Below, piece after piece: positions 11,269 to 54,170 of a DNA stretch of 64,000 bases. The position numbers were made by a program, and so were the translations under genes. The DNA is from Epithemia pelagica (Eukaryota; Protista; Bacillariophyta), in NCBI GenBank assembly GCA_946965045.2, contig OX337233.1:1674001-1738000 (forward strand). The letters are read 5' to 3'. The notes under the pieces are model-generated. The model saw only the letters and a list, made by a program, of their open reading frames with translations. It was not told the DNA's origin and searched no databases. The first letter of the stretch is position 1; every line of letters starts with the position of its first letter.

Positions 11269-14200
11269 TCAATCAGAATCCTTGGTGTAACAACATCCCA
11301 AGTGAAAATCAATAGGTCCATCTCCTTTGAGTTTGAAGTTGTATTTCTCCTTCAGGATCTTGCAGATATTCCCAGGATCAGTAGAAATAATGGCTAAGTC
11401 ATCAACGTATACGGCAATGTATTCGTAACAGTCTTCTCCAGGTGCCTTCCTCATCCAGATATCCGGATCTGCTTTGCTTGGTGAAAATCCCATGTCTGTC
11501 AAAACATCGAATAAGACATCATGCCAGCGTGCGCCTGATGACTTCAATCCATAAAGTGCCTTGTATATAATCAGGATGTGACCTTCTAATTCCTTGAATT
11601 CAGGTCCTGCGACAATGAAAATTTTCTCCCCTGTCAAGGCTTCCAGATATGCGTTTCCAATATCTGCTCCCCATATTTCCAAGTCATTCAAAGTACCCAG
11701 GAATAAGGCAATGCGGAGGTTGCGAATGGAAACAACACCTGAATAGATTGTCTCAACAGGTTCTTTTGTGAGATGTCCATCTGCGACAAGTCTTGCTTTA
11801 TGTCGTCCATCATGTTTTACGTCAAAGACAAGATGTACACGTATCTTATGATATCCTTCAGGTGCATTGGATACTTTCCCTTTAATGAAGATGGCTTTCC
11901 CAAAATCCTTGAATGTCTTGTAGGACTGGATCTGTGACAATTCTAATTCTGTTGCATCTTGCCACTTTGTGTTGCCATGTTGTTTATCAAGAGCGACAGC
12001 TTCCTCATAATTGCGTGGTACTTGGAATCCAAACTTATACTTGACGGAATGGTGAACTTGTTTAATCCTTGACTGTTTGGCTGCTCGAATGAGACGTTTG
12101 CTTGTTTTGACATAACGTTTCAAATGCTTCCATCCAGGTTCGTTGAGTAAATCATGTTTCTTTCCATAAATTGCTACAGTGATCGGATCATCATTGGCGA
12201 TGAGTGATAAAGGTTCATAGGTAGTCTCCCCAGTTTCCCAATCAACAAGCAAATTATATTTGCTCCCCTTGTAATCTGGATCAGTTGTGTTCAGTGGACC
12301 TTGATGGGCAATGACGTCCCTGAACCTGAAAAGATTATCTCCAGAGGTTTGAGCTTGGTTATCTCGTTCGATATACTCCATGAGTTGATTATAGGATATC
12401 ATCTCATCAACATCAGAACTTGTCTTTCGGTAGATGTACTTGACACGTTCTTCCTGTTTCGTTGCTTCTTCATTAAGATCAATGACTCGTTTGATGACAC
12501 GTGCACGGTGTCGCTCCCCATTTTCTTCTGTGTCGCATAGGAATGTGCGTCCTATCATGTCGTCAAAATCGATCGTGGGCATTGGTTTGGATGGATCTTC
12601 ACTATCACTGCGAATGAAGACAGTGTCAGCTTGCTTATCATTGTCATCCTTCTCAGACGAATCCTCCCCTGAAGGTCGATCCACACGTAGGTTAGGTGTA
12701 GTGGATTCAACACGGCGAACGGCAGAACGGTAGATTATCTGGTTATCCTGGGTGAGAATCTTCCAAGTAAAAGAATCACCAACGTTGTGAGCAAAACCAA
12801 CCCAGTGGCCAAGTTTCTCATCAGAAGAAGATGGATATGAACCGGAATTGGGTTCAGCGGGGTCGACACGGTAGTAAACCTCATCCCAGAAAGGAAAGAA
12901 CAAGAGATGAGTAATGTCGGGTGGGCGTCCGGAGAGAGCCTCAAGAGGAGTGCGACCGGAGTGTGTGGGTGATGACGTATGGTTCAATAAGTCACAGACA
13001 TACTCAAGGCAAAGAAGCCAGGTGTTGGCAGGGCAACCAGTGGCATTCATGAGAGCGTTGGTCATACGTTTAACGGTCTGGTAACGGTTTTCAGCCTTAT
13101 TCTGGTGTTGATGATAAGGTTCGGATCGATACTCCCCAATAAGCAAAGTGCGAAGAATGTCTTTAACCTTTTGAGAGATGAGAGATGAACCACCATCACT
13201 GATAAGAGTCTCCATGGCACCACGAAACCGGATGTTGTCCTGAAGAGTATTGACAAACTGTTTGGTTGGCTTGATCCCATAGATATCAGTAACCAGAGTA
13301 TCTCGACCAACAAAGATTTGTGCGACTTTACCGCCATGGTCAACAGCAGGGGTGTCGGAGAAAACCGAGTCAGTAGCAACGGGTTCATGGCGTCGAGGTA
13401 TATTAAGGACTGGATTGCGAGCCTTGAAATGTTTCTTAAGGGTGTCGTGGTCAAAAGTAATGCTACCATTACGTGTAGTGTGCTTGAACGTATCGGCAAT
13501 AACATCTTCAGATTGCCAACCAAAGAATGGACGGAACTTCTTCCAGTCATACGCTTCCTGGTAACGACGGTGGACAGAGGCATGAAGTGTAGGATCATTA
13601 CCTTCTGCGTCAGCATAGATAGAAAAGAAGGGTGCGTCGTCAGGTCCATGATCGTATGGGAGATCCAAAAGGAGATTGAGGTTACAAACAACACGATCAG
13701 TGTACTCCCCATAGTTGTCATATGGATGGTTTGACATACTACCATCAGTCTTGACGTGTTTCCAATCAGGATCATTGTCAGAGGGTGTGGGAGAATACGA
13801 ATGGTCCAGAACACCAGGATCCCATGTGTCGGGTGACGTGAAGATGATCTGAGGTAAGGTATCCATGTCATCGTCGCTGGGGATACCCAAGGAGTGGATG
13901 TAGGCTAACCCATCCTTGATGTGAAGAGGTATGGCACGACCATCAAGTGTAGTGATGCGTTGTTTACCATCAACTTTAACAGGTCGTTCATCAACAGCAA
14001 GTCCGAAATGCTCGAATTGACCAGGAGCATGGATAGATAAGCCCTTCCCATAATAAGCATATTCATTGAAGATGCCGACAATAGGTCCGTCATTGGTCTC
14101 AAACTTTGCGGCACATGTGACGACAGGAAGTCCAGTAAGTTCATGGTTATCAATACCCACAATAGTGATATGGCGGCCAGTCTTAGAAAGGATGCGCATG

Positions 14201-15966
14201 TCAGAACCAGCAAGTCCTCCATTAGCACCACGGTCAATCAATTGATTCCCTGGTAAAGTAGATTTCCTGGAAAACAGATAGCGTGGAACATGTCCTGCTT
14301 GTTTATGCATGTTGGCTTTGAAAGTAACCTTCTTGCTCGTCTTGGACTTGGCGTTAGAAAGAACACTAGTCAGGTCAGTTGCCGGGTGATTGATATCAGT
14401 CGTCATGGCTTGGTTGATAAATTGTGTAACCGGATCTGAATCATCTGAATGCTCAGGGACTACGCCAGGTGAGTCGTCATCAGATGCAACTTGGTTGGGG
14501 TCAGGGTCAGGTTCCGGATCAATGTCGAGGGCATGTGTTTGCACTGTCCTCGGTGTTGTTGATGAAGGTGCTTGAATCATCTTGTTATACTCAATGATCA
14601 ACTTGCGATCTTCTTCAGAAAGTTTGAACCATAGGTCACGCGGTAGACTAACCTTGGACGAAGAGGATGGAGATTCAGATGTCGCTTTGGTGTTGTGGAC
14701 ATGATACTCCATATCATCTTGTGAGGTTATGTCAGCATCTGTATCTTGGCCATATAGTGATTCATGTTGTTTGACATGTCGACGGCGACTATGAACAGAT
14801 GACTGGGTTGCTTGATCATGGTCATAAGCTGCGTCTAGAAGGAGACGGAAGTATGATTGATAGCAAAGGGATTTTGCACCGGATTTGGTGTTCACCACAT
14901 TATCCAAGATCTTGACTCGGCGGAGATCAGGTACCTTTTCTACAGCTTGCATGAGGAAGGTCATCCTGGTATGATCAGGGATGCGATCAGACAATGTCAC
15001 TAAATTGTCTAGCAAACGTAGCTGCTCTTGAAAGTGTAGAAGAAATTGACGTGTTGTTCCGCGCCATGTGTCGTCAAGACGTAGATTGGAAATGTAGTTG
15101 GTTAAGCGGAGGACTTCTCGCTTTGCTAGGTCGGATTCGGTATGCAAAGAGTGTAACTTCTGCAATACGGCACGCGCATCTTCATCATGTTCATGTTCAC
15201 GTACATAGGCTCGACCTTGGTCAGTCTGAATGATACGGACAAGAACGGAGTAAAGAAATACTTGTTGCTCTTGAAAAAGTTCTTCGGCATACTCATCATC
15301 ATGGGGTGGTGTGTATTTGAAATTCAGAACGTTGGATAGGCCTTGAGCCTTAGCTGTAGTCTTGAATACACGCCAGAATGAATCGTAGTATCGTTCATCC
15401 TTGAATACCTCATATGCAGTTGCGTCGCGCTTAGTTCCCTTTCTGAATGCTGTAAGGTCTTGTTGAGATTGGGATGCGGCAGTAACTGTGCTGACAGATT
15501 TCACAGATGACGGTGACTTCATTGGTGAGACTGGGACTTGGCTAGGTGGTCCCTTAGAGAAATCTGTGTTGATCCTCCAAGTGTTGAACTCTTTCCTCGT
15601 TAGGTTCATCCAGTCGCTATTGGATAGCTCGTCTTGAATTTCATTGGTCTTGTATGTGGCCCAATAAGCCAAGAGCTTGATCTGCTGTCTTGTGGGGCCT
15701 TGTAGATCATGTGTCTGTTTGTTGACCTTGTATTGTGTCAGTTCTTTCATGGATTCCTCGGTATTAGTTTGCATATACGAGATAACATGGGTAATGTTCT
15801 CAAAACCATGGTATTTCATCCACTTCATTAAGTAGTCGGCCCTTTCTTTGGTGAAGAATTGGCAGACAGTAAATATGATGTGGTCGAATAGGTCTGTGTC
15901 CGAGACATTGTCTTGGTTATCTTCTCCCTTAGGAGTCGTAGGTGTCTTGGGTGATTGAGGATCCAT
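11269..15966 (-). CDS. gag-pol: Copia gag-pol polyprotein, copy 2
   Basis: Translation identical to 759-5456. Confidence 0.95.
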   Translation of the reverse strand: MDPQSPKTPTTPKGEDNQDNVSDTDLFDHIIFTVCQFFTKERADYLMKWMKYHGFENITHVISYMQTNTEESMKELTQYKVNKQTHDLQGPTRQQIKLLAYWATYKTNEIQDELSNSDWMNLTRKEFNTWRINTDFSKGPPSQVPVSPMKSPSSVKSVSTVTAASQSQQDLTAFRKGTKRDATAYEVFKDERYYDSFWRVFKTTAKAQGLSNVLNFKYTPPHDDEYAEELFQEQQVFLYSVLVRIIQTDQGRAYVREHEHDEDARAVLQKLHSLHTESDLAKREVLRLTNYISNLRLDDTWRGTTRQFLLHFQEQLRLLDNLVTLSDRIPDHTRMTFLMQAVEKVPDLRRVKILDNVVNTKSGAKSLCYQSYFRLLLDAAYDHDQATQSSVHSRRRHVKQHESLYGQDTDADITSQDDMEYHVHNTKATSESPSSSSKVSLPRDLWFKLSEEDRKLIIEYNKMIQAPSSTTPRTVQTHALDIDPEPDPDPNQVASDDDSPGVVPEHSDDSDPVTQFINQAMTTDINHPATDLTSVLSNAKSKTSKKVTFKANMHKQAGHVPRYLFSRKSTLPGNQLIDRGANGGLAGSDMRILSKTGRHITIVGIDNHELTGLPVVTCAAKFETNDGPIVGIFNEYAYYGKGLSIHAPGQFEHFGLAVDERPVKVDGKQRITTLDGRAIPLHIKDGLAYIHSLGIPSDDDMDTLPQIIFTSPDTWDPGVLDHSYSPTPSDNDPDWKHVKTDGSMSNHPYDNYGEYTDRVVCNLNLLLDLPYDHGPDDAPFFSIYADAEGNDPTLHASVHRRYQEAYDWKKFRPFFGWQSEDVIADTFKHTTRNGSITFDHDTLKKHFKARNPVLNIPRRHEPVATDSVFSDTPAVDHGGKVAQIFVGRDTLVTDIYGIKPTKQFVNTLQDNIRFRGAMETLISDGGSSLISQKVKDILRTLLIGEYRSEPYHQHQNKAENRYQTVKRMTNALMNATGCPANTWLLCLEYVCDLLNHTSSPTHSGRTPLEALSGRPPDITHLLFFPFWDEVYYRVDPAEPNSGSYPSSSDEKLGHWVGFAHNVGDSFTWKILTQDNQIIYRSAVRRVESTTPNLRVDRPSGEDSSEKDDNDKQADTVFIRSDSEDPSKPMPTIDFDDMIGRTFLCDTEENGERHRARVIKRVIDLNEEATKQEERVKYIYRKTSSDVDEMISYNQLMEYIERDNQAQTSGDNLFRFRDVIAHQGPLNTTDPDYKGSKYNLLVDWETGETTYEPLSLIANDDPITVAIYGKKHDLLNEPGWKHLKRYVKTSKRLIRAAKQSRIKQVHHSVKYKFGFQVPRNYEEAVALDKQHGNTKWQDATELELSQIQSYKTFKDFGKAIFIKGKVSNAPEGYHKIRVHLVFDVKHDGRHKARLVADGHLTKEPVETIYSGVVSIRNLRIALFLGTLNDLEIWGADIGNAYLEALTGEKIFIVAGPEFKELEGHILIIYKALYGLKSSGARWHDVLFDVLTDMGFSPSKADPDIWMRKAPGEDCYEYIAVYVDDLAIISTDPGNICKILKEKYNFKLKGDGPIDFHLGCCYTKDSD

Positions 15967-39039: not shown

Positions 39040-39180
39040 TTGCTCGTTATACTCTACCTGAAAAAGAGATTCATCATACATGATAGCTACCTGCACAATA
39101 ATGGCCAAGACTGTGCTTTGACAAAGGGTGCCTGAACCTCTGATGTAAGACCTGAAAGCATCTGAATCTCTTGTTGACAG
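39040..39180 (-). pseudogene. C-terminal half of an older PHIS/DDE_Tnp_4-type transposase relic split by the 39181-44845 element
   Basis: Reads (ET)VNKRFRCFQVLHQRFRHPLSKH...ESLFQVEY and is contiguous with 44846-45370 once the insertion is removed. Confidence 0.8.
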
Positions 39181-39910
39181 GAACATGCGAAACTATGTCG
39201 GCTATGACCTCACGCGCCCTATGCTAGCAGACAAGGCAGCATTTTAGCTTAGTACTAGCTAAACAGTTCTAGTTCTTGTCGTTTTGGCGATTGTCTCTTG
39301 TTCAAAAACTGGGGCAATAAAAACGGTGCTCACCGTATTAAGCCTCATGAATCAAACGGTCACACACATGATGAAATTTTTGTCTTGTCATGTCTTACTT
39401 ATCAATCATTTGCTAAGCCTGACGAATAATGTAGTCTACACTACATATCTTCTTAGTCTTTTGAGCCATCGGTAAATAAGCTCAACGGCAAGGACTTTCT
39501 GCTCACCACGATAGGCTATAATATTCTTGAATAGCCCAGTTCTCATCATTTGGTCTATTTACAGTACCTCCAGTACCTCTCTAGTACAACAGTACTGCAG
39601 AAAGCACGAGTCGTGCTTCTATTTTGTCGTGGTGCTCCCACGGGATGGTTCTCGCCGACCTCATAAAATGAAGCGGACAAGACGACAAGCGGACAAGATG
39701 AAGCGGACAAGACGACAAGCGGACAAGATGAAGCGGACAAGACGACAAGCGGACAAGATGAAGCGGACAAGACGACAAGCGGACAAGAAGACAAGCGGAC
39801 AAGAAGACAAGACGACAAGCGGACAAGACGACAAGCGGACAAGACGACAAGCGGACAAGACGACAATCAAACAAAAAAACGCAACAAGTTCCACTACGAA
39901 GTTAAGCTAC
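39181..39910 (+). repeat. Left TIR (730 bp) with internal minisatellite at 39668-39866
   Basis: Reverse complement of 44117-44845 with only a few substitutions outside the minisatellite. Confidence 0.95.
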
Positions 39911-39921
39911 AAACAACGTGG

Positions 39922-40506
39922 CTACTCCTCATCCTCTTCCTTTTTCATCTTGAGCGCCTGGGCCTTTTTTGCCTCGCGCTTAAGCTCGATAAGACGATTG
40001 AACTTCTGGCGGTTGATCTCTTGTCCAATGTGTTCTCGGAAGACTTTGAGTGAGAACTTCGCGTACTCCGGACGCGACAAGTACAAGTAGCCGGAAGGCA
40101 TGCGGTCGTGAACACCTTCAGAAATGTCATGACGAAGAAGCAGCTGTGCGGCAGAACCATTCCAAAGAGGGCGGCCATTTCCATCAACTGTTTCTTGGGG
40201 ATGGAGGCGCATGTCGTGCTTGAACGCTTCTTCTTCAATCTTCGATGCTTGTTTCTTGACGGCGACTTGTTTCTGATGATCCTTGAAACGAGCAATGAAC
40301 TGTTCCTTTGTGACCTTCTCCGCCACCACGATCGGGTGGTTACAATACATGTCCCAAATTTTGGATTCCGTCGTCTGGGAGTTGTTCAGAGGGACAATGC
40401 CATTTTCAAGGTCGGACAGCACAAGCTTTCGAGTAGCGCATTTGCGCCAATTGATCCATTCAGCTTTCCGAGAGGGTGCCATTGTAGTAGATATAACGAA
40501 TAGCAC
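39922..40506 (-). CDS. Transposon ORF A, 194 aa (probable start 40482, MAPSRK); two W...L..D...G helical repeats, possible DNA-binding partner
   Basis: Intact ORF with an internal repeat (WRKCATRKLVLSDLENG / WNGSAAQLLLRHDISEG) and a basic-acidic tail. Confidence 0.8.
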   Translation of the reverse strand: MLFVISTTMAPSRKAEWINWRKCATRKLVLSDLENGIVPLNNSQTTESKIWDMYCNHPIVVAEKVTKEQFIARFKDHQKQVAVKKQASKIEEEAFKHDMRLHPQETVDGNGRPLWNGSAAQLLLRHDISEGVHDRMPSGYLYLSRPEYAKFSLKVFREHIGQEINRQKFNRLIELKREAKKAQALKMKKEEDEE

Positions 40507-40893
40507 GATTCAAGTTATCTTAGAAATGAGTGCGTTTGATTGTTTGGTATCTTGGAACGGTTCGTGTTTCTCGCTGGTGAAGTCGCGGTAACAGGACCGT
40601 AACGGGAAGGTTCCATTGGAGAAGATGTCGTGATCAGTCTTTTTGGAACGGTTCGTGTTTCTCGCTGGTGAAGTCGCAGCAACAGCGAAGTTATCTTTTA
40701 ACAAACGAATGCGTTTGATTGTTGTCTTCTTGGAACGGTTCGTGCTTCACGTTGGTGGAGTCGGCGCAACAGGACTGTGGCGGGAAGGTATGCTATATGG
40801 AGGGAGGCGCCAAACTGCGCGCCAATGAGTCTATCACGCAAATGGATCTGTCCCATGGGACCCGAATAAGATCAACGTAGGAATGATCATAAG

Positions 40894-42378
40894 ATGTCTA
40901 TTTTTACGCGTCTAGGATTAGTTTGTCGTTGGAAACGAGGCAAAGAGAGCTCACAACCTCTCATAATGCCGTTTCCTTCGTCTCTTTCCGACGCAGAAGT
41001 GATCTCTCTGCTCTCTGACATTGAGGCCATCGACAAGCCTCGCAACACAGTTGTCTTCAGTGATATTGTTGGGTCAACTTCGAATCGAGGCAACAAGTAC
41101 CGTGGCGACTCGTTTCGACAAGTCCAGAAGCGTTGCTCAGCGCTCACCAAGCTCGATATTGACAAGTACGTCAAGTACCTCGAGCACTACGGCGTGAAAC
41201 CGAGCAAACGCACTCTTGCCGAGCAGAACGGCGGCCAACCACTCGCCCCTGAACAAGAAGTCTTTGCTTCCGACGAGATTTTTGCTGCGTTGGACGACGA
41301 GGACGACAAATTCGACTCTGTTGAAGCTGACGACCAAGACATCGACGATTTCGCGTTGATTGGTGGGTTGGAGAATTTGTCTGTTGGTACATCCACATCC
41401 AAAGTTCAAGGAAAGAAGCACGGCAAAGAAGAAGGACAAGTGACCATCCACCTTCCACCAAGCAAGAAGACACAGTTTCGGAGCCCGAGCCCAGCTACAC
41501 CGCTCACACCACCTCGAGCAGTTGCATCAGCCGCCAGACCCACTGCGTCCAGACGCACAGAGTTGCCATCCTTTGCAACTCCTCCACGCAGCCTGTTTCG
41601 ACAACAAGCACAGACGCCACTCGCTTTCAGCCCCGCCCCGCCGACCTTTGTTCTACCGGAGTCCCAGACCACTCCAATCTTTTCGCCGACGACGGACCAG
41701 CAAAGAATGTCGTCGCACACCACCAACAGCAGCAGTTTGGCGCCGACGGATGCATCCACTGCTAACCACGCGCCATCCGGATCCCTCCATAATCCCATCA
41801 TCATCAACATCGACTTCGACTACCCGGATTCGACGGAGGTGATGGTCTTCAAAGTGCCTGGCGTCGTCTACCACAAGCACCAACGCGTTGTTTATATTAT
41901 CCGCATGAAGGTCGAGCCGCTCAATGTGGATGGGTACAAGGCTTCGATTGCCACCGGGTACCCAGGGCTCGAGAATCGAGCCATCTTGATCGAGGGGCCC
42001 TGGCGCGACGCCATGAATGACGACGTCGCCCAGTTTCTCACTCGCTTCCGCGACAACGCCTTCACTGGGGAGAACGCGAAGAATGTCCTCAACAGCTTGG
42101 GTCGCACCTGCATGATCAGCAGGGAGAACAAAGCCTGTCACACAAAGCATTGGTTGGTCATTTTCCCCGAGGGTGTCGTCTTGGATAACTCAGTTATCCA
42201 CCCTGGGGATGACCGGAAGATGACTACACAGACTGCTCCGATGAAGTTGATGAGCGGATCTGCATCTTTCTTCTCACTTTTTGTGTACTGGCTGGTCGCG
42301 GACAACTGGTCGGCGCCTGTTGGAAATGGTGGTGAAGACACTGTGACTGATGTCAACAGTATGTTTGCTGCACTCTGA
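40894..42378 (+). CDS. Transposon ORF B, up to 494 aa (probable start 40966, MPFPSS); unknown function
   Basis: Long intact ORF: helical N-terminal domain, acidic and P/S/T-rich linker, structured-looking C-terminal domain. Confidence 0.85.
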   Translation: MSIFTRLGLVCRWKRGKESSQPLIMPFPSSLSDAEVISLLSDIEAIDKPRNTVVFSDIVGSTSNRGNKYRGDSFRQVQKRCSALTKLDIDKYVKYLEHYGVKPSKRTLAEQNGGQPLAPEQEVFASDEIFAALDDEDDKFDSVEADDQDIDDFALIGGLENLSVGTSTSKVQGKKHGKEEGQVTIHLPPSKKTQFRSPSPATPLTPPRAVASAARPTASRRTELPSFATPPRSLFRQQAQTPLAFSPAPPTFVLPESQTTPIFSPTTDQQRMSSHTTNSSSLAPTDASTANHAPSGSLHNPIIINIDFDYPDSTEVMVFKVPGVVYHKHQRVVYIIRMKVEPLNVDGYKASIATGYPGLENRAILIEGPWRDAMNDDVAQFLTRFRDNAFTGENAKNVLNSLGRTCMISRENKACHTKHWLVIFPEGVVLDNSVIHPGDDRKMTTQTAPMKLMSGSASFFSLFVYWLVADNWSAPVGNGGEDTVTDVNSMFAAL

Positions 42379-42503
42379 TGATGATGCACGACGAATACCA
42401 TCTGTTTCTCTACTATGTCTCTTGGAAGTGTAGAGAATGTCTCTAGTCTTAATCGATAACTATTAGGAGATTACGTTACGTTCGATTCAACTACGTGTAC
42501 TTC

Positions 42504-43463
42504 CTAGATGACAAAAAGTGGAGCTCCATTACAAATTTGGTACTGGACAATGACGCAGACCGCTTGGAATGCCGATTGATGCTTCCGAATATCATGACGG
42601 TAGGTATCAGAAAGCACTCGGAAGTTCTTGATCCGACTGTTGAAAGTCTCGTGCCGTGCTCGGCATCGAGACTTGAAGCTGCGCAGCTCATTGCTGTCCG
42701 TTGAGACCGGGATGGCAAGCTTGAACATTTCGTCTGGCTTCGAGGTGCGGTATCCTCTGTCGGCAATTGCCATTTTGCCGTCAGCCAGCTTCTGCTTCAG
42801 TCCGTTGCGAAAAATTGTTAGGTCGTGCACGCCTGCTTTGAATGGCCCGTTCATCCAAACAAGATCTCCGCCAAAGATGCTCACCCCGAGTTCATATTTT
42901 ACTCCAGCATGGTTGAACTTCTTCGAGAAATACTTCCGGTCATGAGGGAGTGTCGGGTGCTTCTGTTCCCACACTTTCATGTCGACACCATCAACTGACA
43001 CAACAAACACCTCAGAATCTGGGTCATCAAGTGCATCGGGCCAACGAATGACCTTTGCTTTTAGGCCTTGGATGCGCCTCACCCACAACCAAATCGCCTC
43101 ACCCCTTGAGTACACAATGTTCTGCTTGAACAGTGTGGCGATGGCTTGAGCATTCCTTGGGTAAACAAACAAAAAATGTAGAGCTACTAGAAATCTTTTT
43201 GCTCCCTTGTGGTTCTTCTCATCATCATTGAGCTTCGACTCCGGAATTTCGGTTGTTGTTAGGTCGTACCACATATCGGCTACGGCCAACTGTGATGACC
43301 CATAGTGACCATGGAAGATACCCTCCTGGCGTTGAGGAGACATCTTCAGGATGGCATTAAGGGAGAAGCCAACCAGGAAGATGCCGTATTGCATCATTTC
43401 ATTAGGTGTTATTAGTTGCATGACTGTTTTTTTTATGTCGCTCATACTCCTATGCAATTCCAC
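42504..43463 (-). CDS. DDE transposase, DDE_Tnp_4 / PHIS type, 319 aa
   Basis: SVDGVD...SKKFNHAGVKYELGVSI...VWMNGPF...D...ADRGY...RARHETFNSRIKNFRVL...YRH; the D-D-E triad is intact. Confidence 0.9.
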   Translation of the reverse strand: MELHRSMSDIKKTVMQLITPNEMMQYGIFLVGFSLNAILKMSPQRQEGIFHGHYGSSQLAVADMWYDLTTTEIPESKLNDDEKNHKGAKRFLVALHFLFVYPRNAQAIATLFKQNIVYSRGEAIWLWVRRIQGLKAKVIRWPDALDDPDSEVFVVSVDGVDMKVWEQKHPTLPHDRKYFSKKFNHAGVKYELGVSIFGGDLVWMNGPFKAGVHDLTIFRNGLKQKLADGKMAIADRGYRTSKPDEMFKLAIPVSTDSNELRSFKSRCRARHETFNSRIKNFRVLSDTYRHDIRKHQSAFQAVCVIVQYQICNGAPLFVI

Positions 43464-43664
43464 TTTCCATTAATTCTACTTTGTTTTGTTCGCTATAACA
43501 GTTGGCTTTACTGGCAATTCTTCTACAATTTTGAGTACATAGAGTCGTCCCGCGGGTGTTATCTTCGAGCAAGAAACCAAAGAGGGTCAACTTCACTGCC
43601 ACATTTTGATTCTTCTTTCTTTTTTGTAGGGCTCGAGTAGACGTTTGATTGTTGAGAAGAAAAT

Positions 43665-44078
43665 ATGGACACTGTTGTCTACGGAGACGCCATCAAGTTT
43701 GTTGGAGGCACGTATGTTGGACATGATGGGTGGATGGATCCAAAGCGCTCGGCTACCAAGATGAAGTTCCCTGTGATTGTGAGTTTGGGTGAGGGTGCAA
43801 CAAAGACGACAATGGTCCTCAAGGAGAATGTCGAGCTTGTCCGCGACATTCAACCACCCAGGTGCCTTGAGGAGGCTGTGCTTCAGCAGCATTTGCTGCT
43901 CAACAAGGCGATGAATGCTCTTGTGAAGCAATTTGCCCAGTGTGGATTGGAGAGCCCCAACACGATGGCCGCAATCTTTAAGGTCCGGCTCCAGAGAGCC
44001 ATCGACAAGCAGCGCATTTTAGGACCGAAAGCTTGGCTGCGTCCAGTTGTCTATGATCCCGAGAACATCTCCTCTTGA
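43665..44078 (+). CDS. Transposon ORF D, 137 aa; KOW/SH3-like N-terminus plus helical C-terminus
   Basis: YGDAIKFVGGTYVGHDGW resembles the KOW pattern GDxVxVxxGxxxGxxG. The ORF is intact and ends 38 bp before the TIR. Confidence 0.75.
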   Translation: MDTVVYGDAIKFVGGTYVGHDGWMDPKRSATKMKFPVIVSLGEGATKTTMVLKENVELVRDIQPPRCLEEAVLQQHLLLNKAMNALVKQFAQCGLESPNTMAAIFKVRLQRAIDKQRILGPKAWLRPVVYDPENISS

Positions 44079-44116
44079 GAAGTAGCCTTGCCTCCGGTAG
44101 TTGCCCGTAGTTTGCC

Positions 44117-44845
44117 GTAGCTTAACTTCGTAGTAGAACTTGTTGCGTTTGGTTTGTTTGTCGTTGATTGTCGTCTTGTCCGCTTGTCGTCTTGTCGTCT
44201 TGTCCGCTTGTCGTCTTGTCCGCTTGTCTTCTTGTCTTCTTGTCTTCTTGTCTTCTTGTCCGCTTCATCTTGTCCGCTTGTCGTCTTGTCCGCTTCATCT
44301 TGTCCGCTTGTTGTCTTGTCCGCTTCATCTTGTCCGCTTGTCGTCTTGTCCGCTTCATTTTATGAGGTCGGCGAGAACCATCCCGTGGGAGCACCACGAC
44401 AAAATAGAAGCACGACTCGTGCTTTCTGCAGTACTGTTGTACTAGAGAGGTACTGGAGGTACTGTAAATAGACCAAATGATGAGAACTGGGCTATTCAAG
44501 AATATTATAGCCTATCGTGGTGAGCAGAAAGTCCTTGCCGTTGAGCTTATTTACCGATGGCTCAAAAGACTAAGAAGATATGTAGTGTAGACTACATTAT
44601 TCGTCAGGCTTAGCAAATGATTGATAAGTAAGACATGACAAGACAAAAATTTCATCATGTGTGTGACCGTTTGATTCATGAGGCTTAATACGGTGAGCAC
44701 CGTTTTTATTGCCCCAGTTTTTGAACAAGAGACAATCGCCAAAACGACAAGGACTAGAACTGTTTAGCTAGTACTAAGCTAAAATGCTGCCTTGTCTGCT
44801 AGCATAGGGCGCGTGAGGTCATAGCCGACATAGTTTCGCGTGTTC
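44117..44845 (-). repeat. Right TIR (729 bp) with a rearranged minisatellite (~44170-44358)
   Basis: Reverse complement of 39181-39910. Confidence 0.95.
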
Positions 44846-45370
44846 CAGTCTCATTTCTAGCTCTAACTAGAGCATAGGTCCTCCGTTCATAGTCATGTGT
44901 ACCTGTTTGTGTCTTGGCCCATTGATGACCACCTGCATCAGCAACATGTAGGTTGATTGAAGACCATACAATATTGATATCTGGCCAGTCACCAGCAGGG
45001 AATTGTTCATGGACCCACACTATCCATATAATTTCAATACAAATAGCCACCTCAAACTGCCATTGAATTTATAGGAGAACCACTTTGGATTGAAGGGCTG
45101 TGGCTCACAGATTCTAAAGTCTATGTCATCCACTGACACCTTGCAAAAAAGGCCCAAGAGAATGGACAGACACAGGAAATTGAGAGAGCTAGACAGCAAG
45201 ATGTCCAATTTTCCATGGCTGAAGAATGTATCCAGAAGTTGATAGTGCAATGTGTTGTTTGCACAGATCCAGCATGCAATGGGGAGAAGTGCCTTGACTT
45301 TGGGTTCTTTTTTAACTGTTGATCCACCAAGAACCAAAGCCCGTTTCTTCTGTTTTGATTCTTTCAATAG
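44846..45370 (-). pseudogene. N-terminal/central part of the older PHIS-type transposase relic (insertion target)
   Basis: VSVDDIDFRICEPQPFNPKWFSYKFNG...IVWV...FPAGDWPDINI...RRTYALVRARNET, frameshifted. Confidence 0.8.
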
Positions 45371-45675
45371 ACAAGGCTACATTCCTCATGGACCCAGAGC
45401 CTGTCAACTTCAAGTGACTCCTTTTCTGTGCTCACAAGACAAGATCTGCAGCAAACCTCAGAGACTTTTTATTGGTGTAGGTGACATGCAATATGCCCTC
45501 CTTCAACTCCTTCCTGTGTGCAAATGTGAAGAGTAGAGAATAACTGGTGTTAGAATTAGGAATTGAAATATGACTAATTATAAATGCTTTGGGTATACAC
45601 TTACAGTAGATTCACAACCATGTATCATTATGTCCTTGCAACATCCCAACTTATCATAAAACTGGGCAGTAGTCA

Positions 45676-46466
45676 TGTTAGAATTCTCACCGTCTATGGT
45701 GGTTAGATTCTACATCTCATCGATTCCCCATGTCACATAGCCTCGTGCTATCGCATCATGCCACCTAGCTTCGAGCTATGTTCCCTAGCTGCGCTATATC
45801 GACCTATATTTCTTCGCAAATCATGAAAAGTGAGAATAGATTGACGAACTCACTCTCAAGACTAAACTGGGTCGTGCGGTATTACAACGAACGTAAATTT
45901 GGCCGTTGCTCGGACATTATACTAATGCCCTAAGCGTACGCGCCCGAAATCATCGAGCGCGCCCAAGCAACATCCAAGCGCCGTCGGATCCTATCCGATC
46001 CAACTGTCTAAGTATCCCAAGCACGACACACGATCATGCGAGACCATATTTCCATTCCCACAATCTCCAAATTGTCAACAAGCTGCGCGCCATGAAAACA
46101 ACTATGCCAACCCAAAGCAAGAGCTGTTGACCCTGTATATGTTATCCGCCCACATATACATGTCATATACATCACATGAATCGACTCCAACTATTCCAAA
46201 CCTGTTGCCGCCAAGAACCTATGACACATGACCCTTGGCAGGACTGAACATTTCACGTAGACCTATCGTAGTAATCAACACACAATCTAACAATAGTATC
46301 ACCATTTATCACATCCTCTTTTGTGTCCCGACTATCCCTTTGATAGACTACGACTTGGTTTCCTCTCTTACCCGTGGAGAGGTTTGTATCGGTTGGTGAC
46401 TAACTGATTGTCTGCTCTACCGAGCATCAATGCCACTGCAACTGCAATATCAAGAGAATTGTAACA
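45676..46466 (+). repeat. 5' LTR of the sister copy (~791 bp)
   Basis: TGTTAGAATTCTC ... GAGAATTGTAACA (12/13 inverted match), followed by the variant PBS GATGAACAGTC. Confidence 0.72.
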
Positions 46467-46502
46467 GATGAACAGTCTCAAAGCTTATTTCCTTGTGGTT
46501 TT

Positions 46503-47282
46503 ATGGATACTAATGAGCTTATCGCTCCTGTACGACAGATCTATCGAGCCAACCTGCATCCCGGGCAGCCCGATACCCTGGTGCAGCAGGAACTGGTGCC
46601 GACGCCGAAGGCAGCCAACACATCGGTCAACATCTCCGTCGACAGTTCCAACAGCAACCCATTCGAGACTCCAACCCAGCCTCACACTCCGATGCCTGCG
46701 CCGTTGGTTCGGCCACCGAGTCCACCTCGTCGGCTCGTCCCTTCTCGATCCTGTCGTACCACCCGGTTGATTGCTGATCATATCAAGTACTTCCGTCAAC
46801 CAACTTCTTCGACCTTCGATCCCGAGATCATCCGTGGGGAGACCCAGATCGAACGCCAGTTCCAATCGGTGACCCACATCGTCGACCAAGAAGACATTGA
46901 ACGTCTGAACGACCAACTTCATCGCTCTCCGAGGCGCCGCCTCATCTTGGCCGCCTTCTCGGGCAACCCCATCCGTACTGTCCACCTCCACTTCCTAACC
47001 TTCGAGCGCCCAACTGGATACTACAACACCATCTACATCGTGAACGCGACGACTTGCCCCCTGCCTCCTAACGTTGTACGCCTAGATAACTACGTTGCCT
47101 ACATTCACGAGGTCCATTCCATCGAGGACCATCGTGCAACTATCTTCCATTTGCGTGCCCAGACCGAGAACCACTCGGCTGAAGGTGATACCCCTTCTTC
47201 TGTTGCTTGTGCTGCCCCATCTGAGCCTGGAAACGACTCTGATCATTCGGAAGAGAGTGGAGATTCAGAAACCGAAGCTTAA
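46503..47282 (+). CDS. Extra 259-aa ORF, sister copy
   Basis: Same length as the array ORF, with about 24 aa differences by manual count and no indel or stop. Confidence 0.7.
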   Translation: MDTNELIAPVRQIYRANLHPGQPDTLVQQELVPTPKAANTSVNISVDSSNSNPFETPTQPHTPMPAPLVRPPSPPRRLVPSRSCRTTRLIADHIKYFRQPTSSTFDPEIIRGETQIERQFQSVTHIVDQEDIERLNDQLHRSPRRRLILAAFSGNPIRTVHLHFLTFERPTGYYNTIYIVNATTCPLPPNVVRLDNYVAYIHEVHSIEDHRATIFHLRAQTENHSAEGDTPSSVACAAPSEPGNDSDHSEESGDSETEA

Positions 47283-47581
47283 TTACTCATAGTTAACTCC
47301 CGTCCTCTCAAAACCGTTCCAAGACTTAAACTCAACGCACATCCGGGTACCCTTGGTCGCACAACACGCCACACATTCCCGTGTTGAAACTCAGCGAAAA
47401 TTTGTCGGAATCAACGGAAATGTCCAGGAGTCGCACATCACAACACACATCCGGGTAACACATACGTGGTACATAAGTGGCACACGTGGTACATCCGGGT
47501 TCACATCACATCACACATTAAATAAACCACATCACAATCACACCGCACATTAAATAAACATCGAACCAACCAAATAACACC

Positions 47582-49739
47582 ATGGATCCTCAATCACCCA
47601 AGACACCTACGACTCCTAAGGGAGAAGATAACCAAGACAATGTCTCGAACACAGACCTATTCGACCACATCATATTTACTGTCTGCCAATTCTTTACCAA
47701 GGAAATGGCCGACTACTTAACGAAGTGGATGAAATTCTATGGTTTTGAGAACATTACCCATATCATCTCGTATATGCAAACTAATACCGAGGAATCCATG
47801 AACGAACTGACCCAATACAAGGTCAACAAACAGACACATGATCTACAAGGCCCCACAAGACAGCAAATCAAGCTCTTGGCTTATTGGGCCATATACAAGA
47901 CCAATGAAATTCAAGACAAGCTATCCAATAGCGACTGGATGAACCTAACGAGGAAAGAGTTCAACACTTGGAGGATCAACACAGATTTCTCTAAGGGACC
48001 ACCTAGCCAAGTTCCAGTCTCGCCAATGAAGTCACCGTCATCTGCGAAATCTGTTAGCACAGTTACCGCCGCATCCCAATCTCAACAAGACCTTCCGGCA
48101 TTCAGAAAGGGAACTAAGCGCGACGCAACTGCGTATGAGGTATTCAAGGATGAACGATACTACGATTCATTCTGGCGTGTAGTCAAGACTACAGCTAAGG
48201 CTCAAGGCCTATCCAACGTTCTGAATTTCAAATACACACCACCCCATGATGATGAGTATGCCGAAGAACTTTTTCAAGAGCAACAAGTATTTCTTTACTC
48301 CGTTCTTGTCCGTATCATTCAGACTGACCAAGGTCAAGCCTATGTACGTGAATATGAACATGATGAAGATGCGCGTGCCGTATTGCAGAAGTTACATTCT
48401 TTGCATACCGAATCCGACCTAGCAAAACGAGAAGTCCTCCGTTTGACCAACTACATTTCCAATCTACGTCTTGACGACACATGGCACGGAACAACACGTC
48501 AATCTATTCTACACTTTCAAGAGCAGCTACGTTTGCTAGACAATCTGGTGACATTGTCTGATCGCATCCCTGATCATACCAGGATGACCTTCCTCATGCA
48601 AGCTGTAGAAAAGGTACCTGATCTCCGCCGAGTCGAGATCTTAGACAATGTGGTGAACACAAAATCCGGTGCGAAATCCCTTTGCTATCAATCATACTTC
48701 CGTCTTCTTCTGGACGCAGCTTATGACCATGATCAAGCAACCCAGTCATCTGTTCATAGTCGCCGTCGACATGTCAAACAACATGAATCACTATATGGCC
48801 AAGATACAGATACTGACATAACCTCACAAGATGATATGGAGTATCATGTTCACAACACTAACGTGACATCTGACTCTCCATCCTCTTCGTCCAAGGTTAG
48901 TCTACCGCGTGACCTCTGGTTTAAACTTTCTGAAGAAGATCGCAAGTTGATCATTAAGTACAACAAGATGATTCAAGCACCTTCATCAACAACGCCAAGG
49001 AAAGTGCAAACACATGCCCTTGACATTGATCCGAAACCTGATCCTGACCCCAATCAAGTTATATCTGACGACGACTCACCTGGCGTAGCCTCTGAGCATT
49101 CAGATGATTCAGATCCGGTCACACAATTTATCAACCAAGCCATGACGACTGATATCAATCCTCCGGCAACTGACCTGACTAGTGTTCTTTCTAACGCCAA
49201 GTCTAAGACGAGAGAGAAGGTTACTTTCAAAGCCAACATGCATAAACAAGCAGGACATGCTCCGCGCTACTTGTTTTCCAGGAAATCTACATTTACCAGG
49301 CAATCAATTGATTGACCGTGGTGCTAATGGAGGACTTGCTGGTTCTGACATGCGCATCCTTTCTAAGACTGGCCGTCATATCACTATTGTGGGTATTGAT
49401 AACCATGAACTTACTGGACTTCCTGTCGTCACATGTGCCGCAAAGTTTGAGACCAATGATGGACCTATTGTCGGCATCTTCAATAAATATGCTTATTATG
49501 GAAAGGGCTTATCTATCCATGATCCTGGTCAATTCGAGCATTTCGGACTTGCTGTTGATGAACGATCTGTTAAAGTTGATGGTAAACAACGCATCACTAC
49601 ACTTGATGGTCGTGCTATTCCCCTTCACATCAAGGATGGGTTAGCCTACATCCACTCCTTGGGTATCCCCAGCGACGATGACATGAATACCTTACCTCAG
49701 ATCATCTTCACGTCACCCGACACATGGGATCCTGGTGTT
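47582..49739 (+). pseudogene. gag-pol: gag-protease of the sister copy, frameshifted and truncated before integrase
   Basis: Homologous to the array gag. An extra A at 49291 shifts the frame just before LIDRGANGG. Confidence 0.92.
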
Positions 49740-50160
49740 TACCCTAGCAAAGAGACGGGGATGTCAGTAAAGTGAATTTAGTAAGAAAAAGAGGCTCTAG
49801 TAGCAGAAATAACATCTCTCTGTTGCCCAAACCCTGACTTTTCAGCAACTCATGATATCCACAGATCTTAGACACTGCCCCAACACTTCAGCCTCAGGGG
49901 TATCCATCATCAATCTGTCAGACTCATTCAAGGTTATGATCAGTACAAAACATTAAATTTTCTTGAAAATGTGCAAACTATGAATATTGGTGGTGGTTCT
50001 TGTCTGAACGGATGTCACTAGGGACCATTTGAATATTTCGTTTTGTGTGTGGAATGAGAAAATGATCCTTTGCGACCAAACAGTCATATATGCGACCATA
50101 TCCTAAAAAGCTGCTGTGGGCTTCCCGGGTGATCTAACCAAAACAAAGTGGGCGCGCTTT

Positions 50161-50242
50161 GGCAAAGTCTTAAGCATGATCTAAACAGACATTTCCCATG
50201 GGGCAAAGTCTTAGGCATGATCTAAACAAACATTTCCCATGG
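50161..50242. repeat. 41-bp tandem duplication flanked by a 14-bp imperfect inverted repeat
   Basis: ggcaaagtctta(a/g)gcatgatctaaaca(g/a)acatttcccatgg x2; inverted repeat at 50144-50157 and 50242-50255. Confidence 0.85.
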
Positions 50243-50969
50243 TGCACCCACTTTGCTTGGATGACGTGCTTGTCGGTTGGATTGACGAGAGTTAGGCTGA
50301 GGGGAGGGCCATGGTCTGTGCATTAGGGATTCCTAGTTCTCCGTGGTGTTTGGGAAGGGTGGCAATGAGGAGAGCGTGAGGGGGGAGTGACAGGTGTTGT
50401 TGTGTTGTACGTTGGAGAAAAGTGGAGTTGAGAGTGTCGAGTTGATGGATTGAGCTGAGAGTGTTTTATGTTGTTAGCTTTTGAACGAAATCTCCCCTAC
50501 ATTAGTCTAAGTCTGGAGGTGACCCCTTATAATTTTATCTTTTATCTCTCTACTTTTGTTCAGTTTATCAGACCCATTGGTCATTAGCACCATGGAAATG
50601 GCAAGGCCTGGGAAGGCAGAGAACATCCAGGTCGACCCTCATTTCATGACACATGAATCGACCTCCATGCGGCCCACTGAATTGGTGCACCATGGTCTCG
50701 TTTGCGGAAACAGATCGACAGAGTGTGTCACAGTCACGGGGACCACGGTTCACGGACGCATGATCCACCCTAATCCGCTAGGGAAAACAGAATGCGAAAC
50801 CGACCGCCAAAAGATACTACTACCGAACGGCCGAGGAACTCCATTATTCCACTGAAACCGCCATTCATTGTACATCATTCTAAAGAACCCGGTGCAGGTA
50901 ATACTGAATCTCATTTTTCGCTCATAAATCCATTTGCGTTGCGTTTGTTTTGTCCTTGAGCTTTATCAA

Positions 50970-51700
50970 CAACCATGACAGCTGTGGCTCTTTGACAGGC
51001 CTTTCAGAAAATTGGCTGCAGGACTATTCGGACAACGATGTAGAAACTTTGTGCTCGGCGTTGAAGAAACCAGGCGGGTTGTCTGATGCAGAAGATGGAA
51101 CGATGATGGTCAATCCAGGACTGACCGTACCGAGATAAACTTAAAATTGCTTTGTTTTCTTTGTCCTCATTACTCTTATACCAGTTGTACCCTTGATGCA
51201 GGATCCATCCAGTTCGCACTTTTGAATCCAATGGTGGCGGTGAAGGCGGAAGAAGACTACCCCAATGAATTTGACAAGAGCTGTTCCCGATGTTATGGCA
51301 ATTTGGCCCCAGCATTTTGGCCCCAACATTCGAACCAGTATCGTGGGCAATCTGTTGTTTCTCTATCGTATATCATTCGTATCACCCAAAACCCATAAGC
51401 CGAAGCGGAAGATCCCTCATATATATAATATATAATATATAGGGCAGGCAAACAGCACATATAGCTCGATCCTATAGGAGATGGAAGGAAGATGCTACAT
51501 ACAATGCTAACAACGCTCGTGTTTGGACTCTGTTGCAGGCGGCGATGGATTGAACACCGGAACATGTATAACTGGATCTCTTCCCATGCAGGCGCATGCG
51601 GCATGGACTGCATTTGTTGCACATTATCGTGGATCTTCAGCCATTGAGAACATTGTTACTTCTTCATCCAGAGAGCCAACAATACAAGAGGGACTGAACT
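50970..51700 (+). pseudogene. gag: Degenerate CoDi gag relic (third family)
   Basis: DNDVETLCSALKKPGG...NPGLTVP and AAWTAFVAHYRGSSAIENIVTS, with several frameshifts. Confidence 0.55.
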
Positions 51701-51949
51701 GGCATTTCGGTTACTTAATCCCATAAGTTGACAGTTTGTAGACCTAGGCTTCCATCGAGGTAGCTTTGTCCCATCTTCAAAAGTCTGTTGCTGATTGCAT
51801 CCCATACTTGTAGATGGTTTCCTTGATGGCTGCTTCCACTTCCTCATTATCTTCCTAGAGAATATGGTGTAAACAATGTCCCATTTTTTCCTGGGTTTTC
51901 TTCCCTGTAGGCTAGCTGCGTCCACTGTCATATACACACATTCTGTCTT

Positions 51950-54170
51950 CGTCGCGACCATAGATGAATACCTCTAAGCCAGCATTCCATAACCTGTCAA
52001 AGATATGGATCACCCGTAGACGGTATATTTTGGGGTCCCCTGGATCTTTTTCCGAGCCACCGGTCGGCAAAATGACCTGTTTGAAAGGAAGCAGTCAAGG
52101 CACGGCCCGTCACATCGAAAAAGTGGGCGCATTTGTTTTCAGCGGGGGCACTGATGGCCAAGGTGTCACTGTGGGTAGTAATTTGGTCTCCACTAATAGT
52201 GCAATTGGGATTGGCTCTGGCCAGAAGGAGCTTGTCTGGTTGATGAGCAAGAACTGCCTGGGGGGCATTTGTATTATCATCTTTTTTTGGGAAGGTCCAG
52301 AAGTAACAGTGACACCGCTCGGGGATGTAGACGTGGACTCTTTCCACCGTTGGAATTTGCGTCGTAAGTCAGCAGCACTGGTAATAATAACGTTTGAAAT
52401 TCGGGAAAGTGGTGGCCCTTGAAGCTGTGCTAAAAGCGCTGCGGTGGCGGGGTTGAGGTTTGGCAGTTGGAGGGCACACTGGATGCCCTGATGGCCATGG
52501 CACGCATTGCAGCCTAAACAGTCGAGGGTGGGTCCCTGGGTGAAGAAGGGTCCTTGGGTATGGCTAAAATGATTCAAGTTTCTGCTGATCAGGCGTGGCC
52601 CAATGTGATCCGGGTCGTGGAGCCACTCGTATTCGCCCGTGGCACGCCCTTCCAGATCCACAGCCGGAACTTTGAGGAATGCCAGACCGCCGCCTGATTG
52701 ATGTTTGCGTAGCATGGTCCTAAAGCGATAAAATACTCTTTGGACGGATTTGACACCTTGGAGCCCTGCCAGTACTGCAGCCTTCTTTTGATTATCTGGC
52801 TCGAGCTTTGAGGAATTCCTCTTGCAATAGGACACTGTTGCGTTCACATTCGGACAAGTAACTTTTGGCTTTTTTTAAGTGGCTGAGGAGCATTCGGCGG
52901 GTAGGAGGAGACTCAAAAGTTGGAGGATCCCACTCCCGTTCGTCCAAAAAATATCTTTCAGTGCGTAGCTCAGAAATCCAAATGCACCAGAACCGAACCC
53001 GGCGGCGGGCATTAACAAGTGTTGGAGACCAAGGGTGGGAAGTGTGGAGAGGGTGGGTGTGATGGGCTCCACACTTCCTCTCGGCCGACAACATACCTCG
53101 ACTTAACTCGATAATTCCATTCAAAAGGGATTGCGTGGTTGGAAGGATCTTCGGAGGCAAGTTGTTCCAGACGATCAGATCTTTGAACCAGTTTGTGTTG
53201 GACGGAGTATTCTAATACGTGGGTGCGATATTGTAACGCGTGGTTGATGCGATGCATATGCAGGAGCCGCGTTAAAGTCGTGTCGAGGGGAGTAGGCTGT
53301 CCCCCGAAAAATTGCTGGATGTGGAGATCTACGAACAATCCTCGATGGTCAGAGGGAAAAAGTTCATGGTAAGCTGAGATGCCCGCTCGGGCCGTGCAAT
53401 TTGCAATGAGACGGGTCCCAAAGATGTAATCTAATCGTTTTGTTCCATGTTGATATGTGCCGGGGGGTGCCGAGGTCGGTCAAGGAACATTCCTGGACAA
53501 AGCGCAGGAGATGGCCACTTCCGTCATACAAACTCTCGTTTGCATCGATCATTAGCACTACCTTGTACTTGTCCAATACCAACTCATGAATTTCCTTCTG
53601 GAGGTCGCTTGTAATGGTCCAATACCAACTCATGAATTTCCTTCTGGAGGTTGCGGAAGAACTGCTTCCTGGGATCGGGGGTGTTGTTGGGGTTTTGGGT
53701 CCGAAGTAGACGCCACTGCTGCATAAAGGCGGTGTGGCCACCGGCTTGGCTGGGATCTTGATTACACACCCTGTAAGTGGAAATCACTGCTAACTTGCTC
53801 TGCTGATGATGTCCCCGTACAAGGAGCGCGGACCAGCAGCCCATCTGTAACGGATCCGCACGCTGTCGGCATCTGGGTTGCCATGGACCATGGGCCAAGA
53901 TACAAGTGCCACTAGGCTGGTAGCATGTATGATACCGGACAGATGAAGACGCCGTAGCCATAGTGCACGGTTTGAGGACTCGATTAAATTGATGGAAGAT
54001 TTCATGTTGGGCATGGGGGTTGCACCAATCCACATTGGTCTCGACTAAGCCTAGGATATCCATGTCGGCGCCCATGGTCGTGATGGCCACAGTCTGAGCA
54101 TGGCTGAAATTGGTTTGTGATTCCAGGCCGTTAATGTTCTGGAAATAGAGGCGTAAATGGTCATGATTCT
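51950..54170 (-). mobile_element. Degenerate non-LTR retrotransposon ORF2 (APE endonuclease to start of RT), Ambal-like
   Basis: LRLYFQNINGL (~54125-54158), DILGLVETN, VISTYRVC, VVLMIDANE, KWKESTSTSPSG, KDPGDPKIYRLRVIHIFD (~52000-52050); many frameshifts. Confidence 0.75.
53571..53651. repeat. 35-bp direct duplication at 46-bp period inside the LINE relic (frameshifting)
   Basis: gtccaataccaactcatgaatttccttctggaggt at 53571 and 53617. Confidence 0.9.

Follow-up and report, generated by a model that had tools for sequence, protein, structure and literature searches.

A multi-gene Harbinger-type transposon with long, array-bearing inverted repeats in the diatom Epithemia pelagica

Results

In this study, we examined a stretch of 64,000 nucleotides from the diatom Epithemia pelagica (GenBank assembly GCA_946965045.2, contig OX337233.1, positions 1,674,001 to 1,738,000, forward strand; hereafter the window, in whose coordinates positions are given unless a locus is named) and characterised a DNA transposon that lies within it at 39181-44845. 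The element is 5,665 bp long, has CAG on either side, and its interior is filled by four intact open reading frames (ORFs). According to the ORF map these are ORF A (39922-40482, minus strand; 186 aa from the first ATG), ORF B (40894-42378, plus strand; 494 aa), the transposase, T (42504-43445, minus strand; 313 aa from its ATG) and ORF D (43665-44078, plus strand; 137 aa). They are arranged between the terminal inverted repeats (TIRs) as two divergent pairs, A with B and T with D, as an initial annotation of this stretch had described. The bounds given there were also exact, since the ends read CAG followed by GAACA on the left and TGTTC followed by CAG on the right.

An inverted-repeat search paired complementary arms at 39176-39858 and 44168-44850 (98% across 683 nt), and gapped BLAST carried them inwards to 39926 and 44099 (95.5% over 761 columns). 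By these searches, the left TIR (39181-39926, plus orientation) is about 746 bp long and the right TIR (44099-44845, minus orientation) about 747 bp; the long, repeat-bearing TIRs first reported were found again, with their length revised upwards from about 730 bp to about 746 bp. The left junction reads TTGA CAG and then GAACATGCGAAAC, which is the left terminus, while the right one reads GTTTCGCGTGTTC and then CAG TCTC, the matching CAG triplets at 39178-39180 and 44846-44848 being the two copies of the target site duplication. Arrays (39668-39866, plus orientation, and its mirror at 44168-44358) occupy the inner ~200 nt of both arms. They are built of the 8-nt units GCGGACAA/GACGACAA, with tandem-repeat periods of 8 nt and, at a higher order, of 16 and 30 nt, and the left one is a candidate protein-binding array. 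GGACA cores number 12 in the left arm and 10 in the right, all in uniform orientation relative to the ends. These 8-nt arrays are subfamily-specific, with GCGGACAA in the window family and, in two related loci described below, CTGGACAA (L003) and TCCACAAA (L007). Further long ORFs inside the arms were discarded as genes, as they are translated 8-nt arrays, and BLAST of the 64-kb window found no second copy of the element inside it.

The transposase matches Pfam DDE_Tnp_4 at residues 157-306 (E=2.4e-11; 43.9 bits, cut-off 24.8), the only Pfam domain detected in its 313 aa, and the catalytic residues D152, D229 and E266 are invariant across 16 homologs. Judged from these features it is a PHIS/Harbinger-type transposase, as first called: the protein has the characters of an IS5/Harbinger-type DDE transposase, and the element is TIR-bounded with a duplication in the range of 0-3 bp. 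We found 64 homologs of about 300 aa. All those with a species name come from diatoms (Epithemia clementina, Fistulifera solaris and Fragilaria crotonensis), and transposase and D proteins are both present in ENA assembly ERZ21939226.

To place the four genes in context, loci were located through transposase homologs and then searched with phmmer and with hidden Markov models (HMMs) of the element proteins; gene orders are given here with T on the plus strand. A second copy of the window family in the same assembly, L001 (contig ctg1352l, L001:8564-13960), is 96-98% identical to the window element; the homology ends a few bases from the TIR ends, on the left at 39177-39178, and CAG stands on both sides. 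Three sister subfamilies of this assembly are represented by L003 (transposase 67% identical to that of the window; order D- T+ B- A+), L004 (55%; D- T+ SET- B- A+) and L007 (50%; D- T+ B- A+), and L006 belongs to the same family as L007 and is interrupted by a copia insertion. Elsewhere, the genes recur in an ENA metagenome (L016; 50-54%; A- B+ D- T+), a JGI metagenome (L011; 4.8 kb; B+ D- T+ A-) and Fistulifera solaris (L008; 45%; B+ D- A- T+), in the last of which all four are enclosed by 287-bp TIRs. The set of T, D, A and B is complete in L003, L004, L007, L008, L011 and L016, with varying gene order, and partial in Fragilaria L013 (A and T) and in L012 (A, D and T). The initial annotation asked whether the four genes travel together or whether other copies lack A, B and D; they do travel together, at these six further loci and, with B broken, in L001. 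In L004 a SET gene lies directly 3' of the transposase (L004:9083-9868; Pfam SET 27.4 bits, above the cut-off). A SET gene also lies beside the transposase in Epithemia clementina (L005:9070-9636; 18.2 bits), and the two SET proteins are clearly homologous.

Between subfamilies, pS is 0.65-0.84 (saturated) as against a pN of 0.22-0.54 in all four genes, with a pN/pS of 0.43-0.71 for B, where pS is saturated. As synonymous sites are saturated and amino-acid change is limited, A, B and D are constrained protein-coding genes, and by this sequence comparison we showed them to be inherited together with the transposase and under purifying selection. This bears on two alternatives. The first is that not every one of the four ORFs is a gene, chance ORFs or pieces of one gene split by misread introns being counted among them. 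Gene prediction in the public assembly follows a prokaryotic style, with A called as 135 aa, and the annotation of the Fragilaria transposase has an intron, both of which would fit such an error. Nevertheless, every ORF has full-length, size-matched homologs at several loci, selection acts on them, the AlphaFold2 (AF2) models of A and D are of high confidence and D has 267 representative homologs, so that we regard this explanation as very improbable. The second is a one-off, Pack-type capture, in which A, B and D would be host genes or fragments taken up by a single Harbinger-type copy and without a role. It could draw on word-index searches for A and B, which were nearly empty outside the same assembly, and on the Epithemia clementina locus, which has neither gene. 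Set against this, the four families co-occur in three subfamilies (50-67% transposase identity), within the Fistulifera solaris TIRs and on two metagenome contigs, and all four genes are under purifying selection; protein identities of 27-67% also exclude a single, recently transferred element as the source. The gene set shared across subfamilies, together with the constraint on A, B and D, effectively excludes capture of this kind, and we give it hardly any credence.

Target sites were read from the ends that fit the four intact terminus motifs. All 15 are flanked by CNG, 13 of them by CWG, and L004 supplies the remaining two, a CGG/CCG pair. Direct triplets are CAG/CAG in the window element, L001 and L007, CTG/CTG in L008 and CGG in L004. 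Since the central base is shared in direct orientation in 5/5 complete end pairs, the triplets represent a duplication and not an extension of the inverted repeat. Proof of the CAG duplication that had been proposed from the window comes from the sister subfamily L007. Its filled allele reads ...GACGAAC CAG[GGATAC...GTATCC]CAG AAAGTGG..., whereas the empty allele L018 (allelic contig ctg1261l) reads GAACCAGAAAG, or GACGAACCAGAAAGTGG with more flank, and this allelic empty site establishes both the 3-bp CAG duplication and a haplotype polymorphism for the insertion. In the old copy L003 the TIRs are 79% alike and the flanks are unmatched, so that no terminal duplication can be read. For the window family, no empty site was obtained from L017, the allele of the L001 site, which diverges 12 nt ahead of the insertion and does not rejoin within 10 kb.

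The allelic data also bear on the age of the element. The initial annotation had argued for recent mobility from the open ORFs and the near identity of the TIRs. However, insertion of a DNA transposon does not render its two TIR arms identical, and for that reason their similarity cannot date the event and we rejected it as a clock. Recent mobility itself finds better grounds in the L007 insertion, which is polymorphic between haplotypes.

Homologs of D number 267 representatives by exhaustive HMMER search, mostly of 130-150 aa, and D adjoins the transposase divergently at all D-bearing loci except in Fistulifera solaris. The AF2 model of D, built from an alignment of 95 homologs, has a mean pLDDT of 95 and comprises a five-stranded barrel (residues 9-58), three long helices and one short C-terminal helix. 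In Foldseek, the barrel aligns with KOW5 of Spt5 (7okx_Z; TM 0.76 on target, rmsd 2.4 A over 54 residues), as well as with NusG KOW domains and uL24/eL-type ribosomal proteins. Weak Pfam KOW matches occur in 6/95 D homologs, and weak profile matches link D to uL24 in the PDB (E about 0.04). On the strength of the model, D can confidently be predicted to combine an N-terminal KOW/SH3-type barrel with a C-terminal helical domain. The initial annotation had counted three unknown proteins, a description that no longer applies to D, with its KOW-type fold. Three proteins of the D family (P0088, P0106 and P0128; 311-337 aa) contain two or three stretches that resemble D and so represent KOW-type modules in tandem.

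For A and B, homologs were obtained from the transposase-anchored loci and local HMMs, whereas word-index searches returned only two clusters for B, both from ENA assemblies, and only a truncated call on the window's contig for A. Homologs of A are found at 9 other loci. Its AF2 model (mean pLDDT 89, from 10 sequences) places helical modules at 16-54 and 111-136, followed by very long basic helices at 59-93 and 145-185; the two halves are mutually related (hhalign E=5.6e-5), the Fistulifera protein has a third module, and the L012 homolog has an N-terminal SAP-like motif under the Pfam threshold. From this model, A is a probable DNA binder. B has a conserved N-terminal region of about 80 aa, an acidic P/S/T-rich middle and a conserved C-terminal region of about 190 aa, with homologs in L003, L004, L006/L007, L008, L011 and L016. 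A profile-profile comparison of A with the N-terminus of B gave E=0.19 at a probability of 0.3%, which is not evidence of kinship.

The divergent intergenic region between A and B (411 bp) contains three direct repeats of about 62 nt at about 90-nt spacing (40550-40789; repeat search), which are 73-84% alike and are also present in L001; they are possibly a regulatory region shared by A and B. The corresponding region between T and D measures 219 bp (43446-43664) in the ORF map.

The surroundings of the element, first described as decayed DNA, are not simply decayed: the flanks contain Ty1/copia sequences, among them a tandem array of 3 x 10.5 kb that spans 1-31439. It is made of three head-to-tail units of 10,510 bp that are 99.98% identical, each with a Ty1/copia-type ORF of 1565 aa (RVT_2, weak rve) and ORFs of 259-274 aa, and could be a true tandem array of a long terminal repeat (LTR) element or an assembly artefact. 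An inverted partial copy of the array unit (94.8%) lies just right of the transposon at 45676-49739.

Several relatives and neighbours were seen along the way. At L007:~530-3019 lies a gene-less, foldback-like relative with inverted arms of 416 bp, largely made of L007-type 8-nt arrays, and one recognisable terminus, CAG followed by GGATACTCGG; it is possibly a non-autonomous derivative. A more distant relative (L014:274-9261 and L015; transposase 37-38% identical) is a TIR-bounded element of about 9 kb with an A-like protein of 325 aa at its far end and ORFs of 341, 396 and 534 aa without Pfam matches. L018 has a tandem duplication of about 12 kb, with one truncated 183-aa DDE_Tnp_4 gene per unit (L018:2187-2738 and 14161-14712), distant kin of the transposase family. 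In L017, past its divergence from L001 (L017:12105-12140 against L001:8545-8563), we found GAACATGCGA, which resembles an element terminus and is followed by more than 10 kb of unrelated sequence with no element genes.

Discussion

In this study, we described a four-gene Harbinger-type transposon of a diatom. The element is most probably an autonomous, or very recently autonomous, cut-and-paste PIF/Harbinger (PHIS) transposon, of a lineage known so far from diatoms. It is best described as a multi-gene Harbinger/PHIS variant with a Nuwa-type target site and not as a new kind of mobile element. What is new is that A, B and D, one of them a KOW-barrel protein, form a conserved set, that no Myb/SANT partner is detectable, and that the TIRs are long and contain arrays. 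We found no description of the A/B/D gene set in the searchable literature, Repbase being outside this comparison. The initial view of an undescribed system holds in that sense, although the element falls within a known superfamily of which Harbinger1-4_TP and HarbingerS were already known.

A number of observations weigh against this reading of an autonomous four-gene transposon. The copy number of the window family is low (two members in the 90%-identity transposase cluster), and in the other copy, L001, B is broken by a frameshifting deletion of 344 bp. The codon differences between the window element and L001 (6 synonymous and 15 non-synonymous) are too few to speak for or against recent constraint. 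In Epithemia clementina, L005 has D, the transposase and the SET gene, while A, B and TIRs went undetected; this copy may be decayed or domesticated, and as it has neither A nor B, the full gene set is not kept in every relative. Contig ctg1304l (L002, ENA ERZ21939226) matches window 39180-53445 at 99.9%, with 8 mismatches and a 6-nt gap inside B; past the A-side end of the element (L002:14260 against window 39180), it is unrelated to the window before 39180, and its two flanking triplets form no direct duplication. This discrepancy in the left flank points to copies that recombined, a rearranged haplotype or a mis-joined contig. As to the proteins, A had no Pfam match, permissive thresholds included, and no PDB profile match, and the best Foldseek E-value of its model was 2.3, hence no fold was assigned. 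B had no Pfam or PDB profile match and no relatives detected outside these elements. Finally, the roles suggested below for A, B and D are drawn from their folds, their place in the element and analogy.

Harbinger-type elements are the classic example of a two-component transposon, composed of a transposase and a Myb-like recruiter, and are the source of the HARBI1/NAIF1 host gene pair. In Harbinger3_DR, subterminal repeats are bound by this Myb-like protein, which brings in the transposase. In line with canonical PIF/Harbinger elements, the window element has a DDE_Tnp_4 transposase, a 3-bp duplication, accessory protein encoded by a separate gene and subterminal repeats that presumably serve as binding sites. 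It departs from them in its target site, with TWA at 0/15 of the ends read across the subfamilies, in having more than the two canonical genes, without a Pfam match, Myb/SANT included, in A, B or D, and in its long TIRs, where the canonical ones are usually short (about 93% <60 bp).

Among the PHIS lineages, the closest likeness in target site is to NuwaI. The link between CWG duplications and NuwaI, which the initial annotation had raised, is correct: NuwaI elements duplicate CWG, encode a DDE-only transposase and, in a second ORF, a Myb/SANT protein, have TIRs of 12-61 bp that usually start with GGG, and are known from animal hosts only (PMC4482050). Their ORF1 encodes 292-564 aa, 292-368 aa in most families, mostly with DDE_Tnp_4, and Harbinger3_DR was classed by Han et al. 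2015 as NuwaI-2_DRer (PMC4482050). The window element shares with NuwaI and HARBINGER3_DR the 3-bp CWG duplication, and with NuwaI a transposase in the range of ~300-370 aa (313 aa in the window) with DDE_Tnp_4 as sole Pfam domain, the carriage of separate accessory protein(s) and termini that start with G. It differs in having four genes and no detectable Myb/SANT instead of two ORFs, the second with Myb_DNA-bind_5/SANT, and in its TIRs of about 746 bp with a GAACA start. The sister families likewise exceed the NuwaI range of 12-61 bp, with TIRs of 287-701 bp that start with GGATAC or GGTTAC. Further, the window element is from a diatom and not from an animal, and L004 duplicates CGG, not CWG. 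On these sequence features, elements with the CWG signature, likened to NuwaI, are now seen outside animals, in a diatom.

It could be argued from these similarities that the element is an ordinary NuwaI of the Harbinger3_DR kind, in which A would be a very diverged Myb/SANT protein and B and D dispensable passengers with, for example, anti-silencing or regulatory functions. Besides CWG as the duplicated triplet and a DDE_Tnp_4 transposase within the usual length range of NuwaI, the ~55-residue helical modules of A, with their W/aromatic spacing and long basic helices, would fit a homeodomain- or Myb-like three-helix unit, and homeodomains are among its low-probability fold matches. Extra chromatin genes also occur in other PHIS lineages (TET in PHISTA, SET in HarbingerS). 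By contrast, none of 5 A homologs matched the Pfam Myb/SANT model at E<=5, A lacks a PDB profile match or a convincing Foldseek hit, the TIRs of 287-746 bp lie far outside 12-61 bp, NuwaI is reported from animals only, and D is kept beside the transposase where A and B are absent, which is odd for a passenger. We therefore consider an ordinary NuwaI possible but doubtful, and prefer a multi-gene variant with a Nuwa-type target site.

The other described groups are further removed. ISL2EU elements have a 2-bp AT duplication, a THAP-containing transposase and a YqaJ exonuclease ORF, in contrast to the 3-bp CNG of the window lineage, and no Pfam match to THAP or YqaJ was found among the proteins of the window element. 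Spy elements insert at AAATTT without duplication, unlike the L007 subfamily, whose empty site reveals a 3-bp CAG duplication, and Pangu/Harbinger2 elements duplicate ANT, whereas the window lineage is flanked by CNG. Ectocarpus Harbingers have two genes and ANT or TNA duplications. PHISTA elements, three-gene PHIS elements of rust fungi that lie near Nuwa and have TET/JBP and TA duplications (PMC12730594), resemble the window element in that their genes exceed two and a Myb/SANT protein is absent, but differ in their TA duplications, TET/JBP dioxygenase cargo and fungal hosts. In diatoms, Harbinger1_TP, Harbinger2_TP and Harbinger4_TP of Thalassiosira pseudonana were placed near Nuwa in a 2025 tree (PMC12730594, Data S3); the first two cluster with Harbinger4_TP, for which 3-bp duplications are confirmed (PMC12730594). 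They are alike as diatom Harbinger-type families, known here by name and tree position.

HarbingerS deserves separate mention. It is reported as a SET-methyltransferase-carrying Harbinger clade of Phytophthora that is related to Harbinger2/Pangu (Kojima and Jurka, Repbase Reports 2014, as cited in PMC12730594). The likeness lies in a stramenopile element with SET, as L004 and Epithemia clementina L005 have a SET gene beside the transposase; the difference, in a comparison with the reported description, is that no SET gene lies within 39181-44845. The window element might accordingly be a member or sister of HarbingerS, and the window copy a derivative after loss of SET. The adjoining SET genes of L004 and L005 would agree with this, as would the reported oomycete origin of HarbingerS, oomycetes being stramenopiles like diatoms. 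On the other hand, HarbingerS is reported as kin of Harbinger2/Pangu, which duplicates ANT, as opposed to CNG in the window lineage, and 4/6 loci with the full gene set have no SET, which makes a HarbingerS origin improbable.

For the four-gene Harbinger variant that we favour, a mechanism may be outlined. By analogy with NuwaI and Harbinger3_DR, the transposase would cut CWG with a 3-bp stagger. Being a bare catalytic protein, it probably relies on the accessory proteins to recognise the ends in trans. The best candidate is A, which, with its two helical modules, long basic helices and, in one homolog, a SAP-like motif, may bind the subfamily-specific 8-nt arrays and recruit the transposase, and so would be the counterpart of the Harbinger Myb-like protein. 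For D, given its KOW barrel and its almost invariable divergent pairing with the transposase, the likeliest role is that of a transpososome subunit that serves as an adaptor or binds nucleic acid. B, large and partly disordered, could act as a scaffold, in nuclear import or as a subunit directed at chromatin. A bolder proposal, which we hold only tentatively, is that these elements form a distinct diatom-wide, possibly wider stramenopile, PHIS group on a par with Pangu, Nuwa and Spy. Transposition would then depend on four proteins, namely a bare DDE transposase, its KOW-barrel partner D, A as a tandem-helical reader of the subfamily-specific 8-nt arrays from a previously unrecognised family, and B as a large scaffold, with optional SET cargo through which an element would set its own chromatin state.

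Conclusion

In conclusion, our findings extend CWG-targeting PHIS elements from animals to stramenopiles. They have practical application for annotation, in that proteins of the A, B and D families should be treated as transposon genes and not as host genes, D alone accounting for 267 representative clusters in public data. A low-copy, apparently intact and haplotype-polymorphic family is also a candidate endogenous transposon tool or mutagen for diatoms. If true, a four-gene set across diatom genera, with unrelated proteins in place of the Myb-like partner and a KOW-barrel protein among its products, would widen the known ways in which DDE transposases are recruited to their ends.

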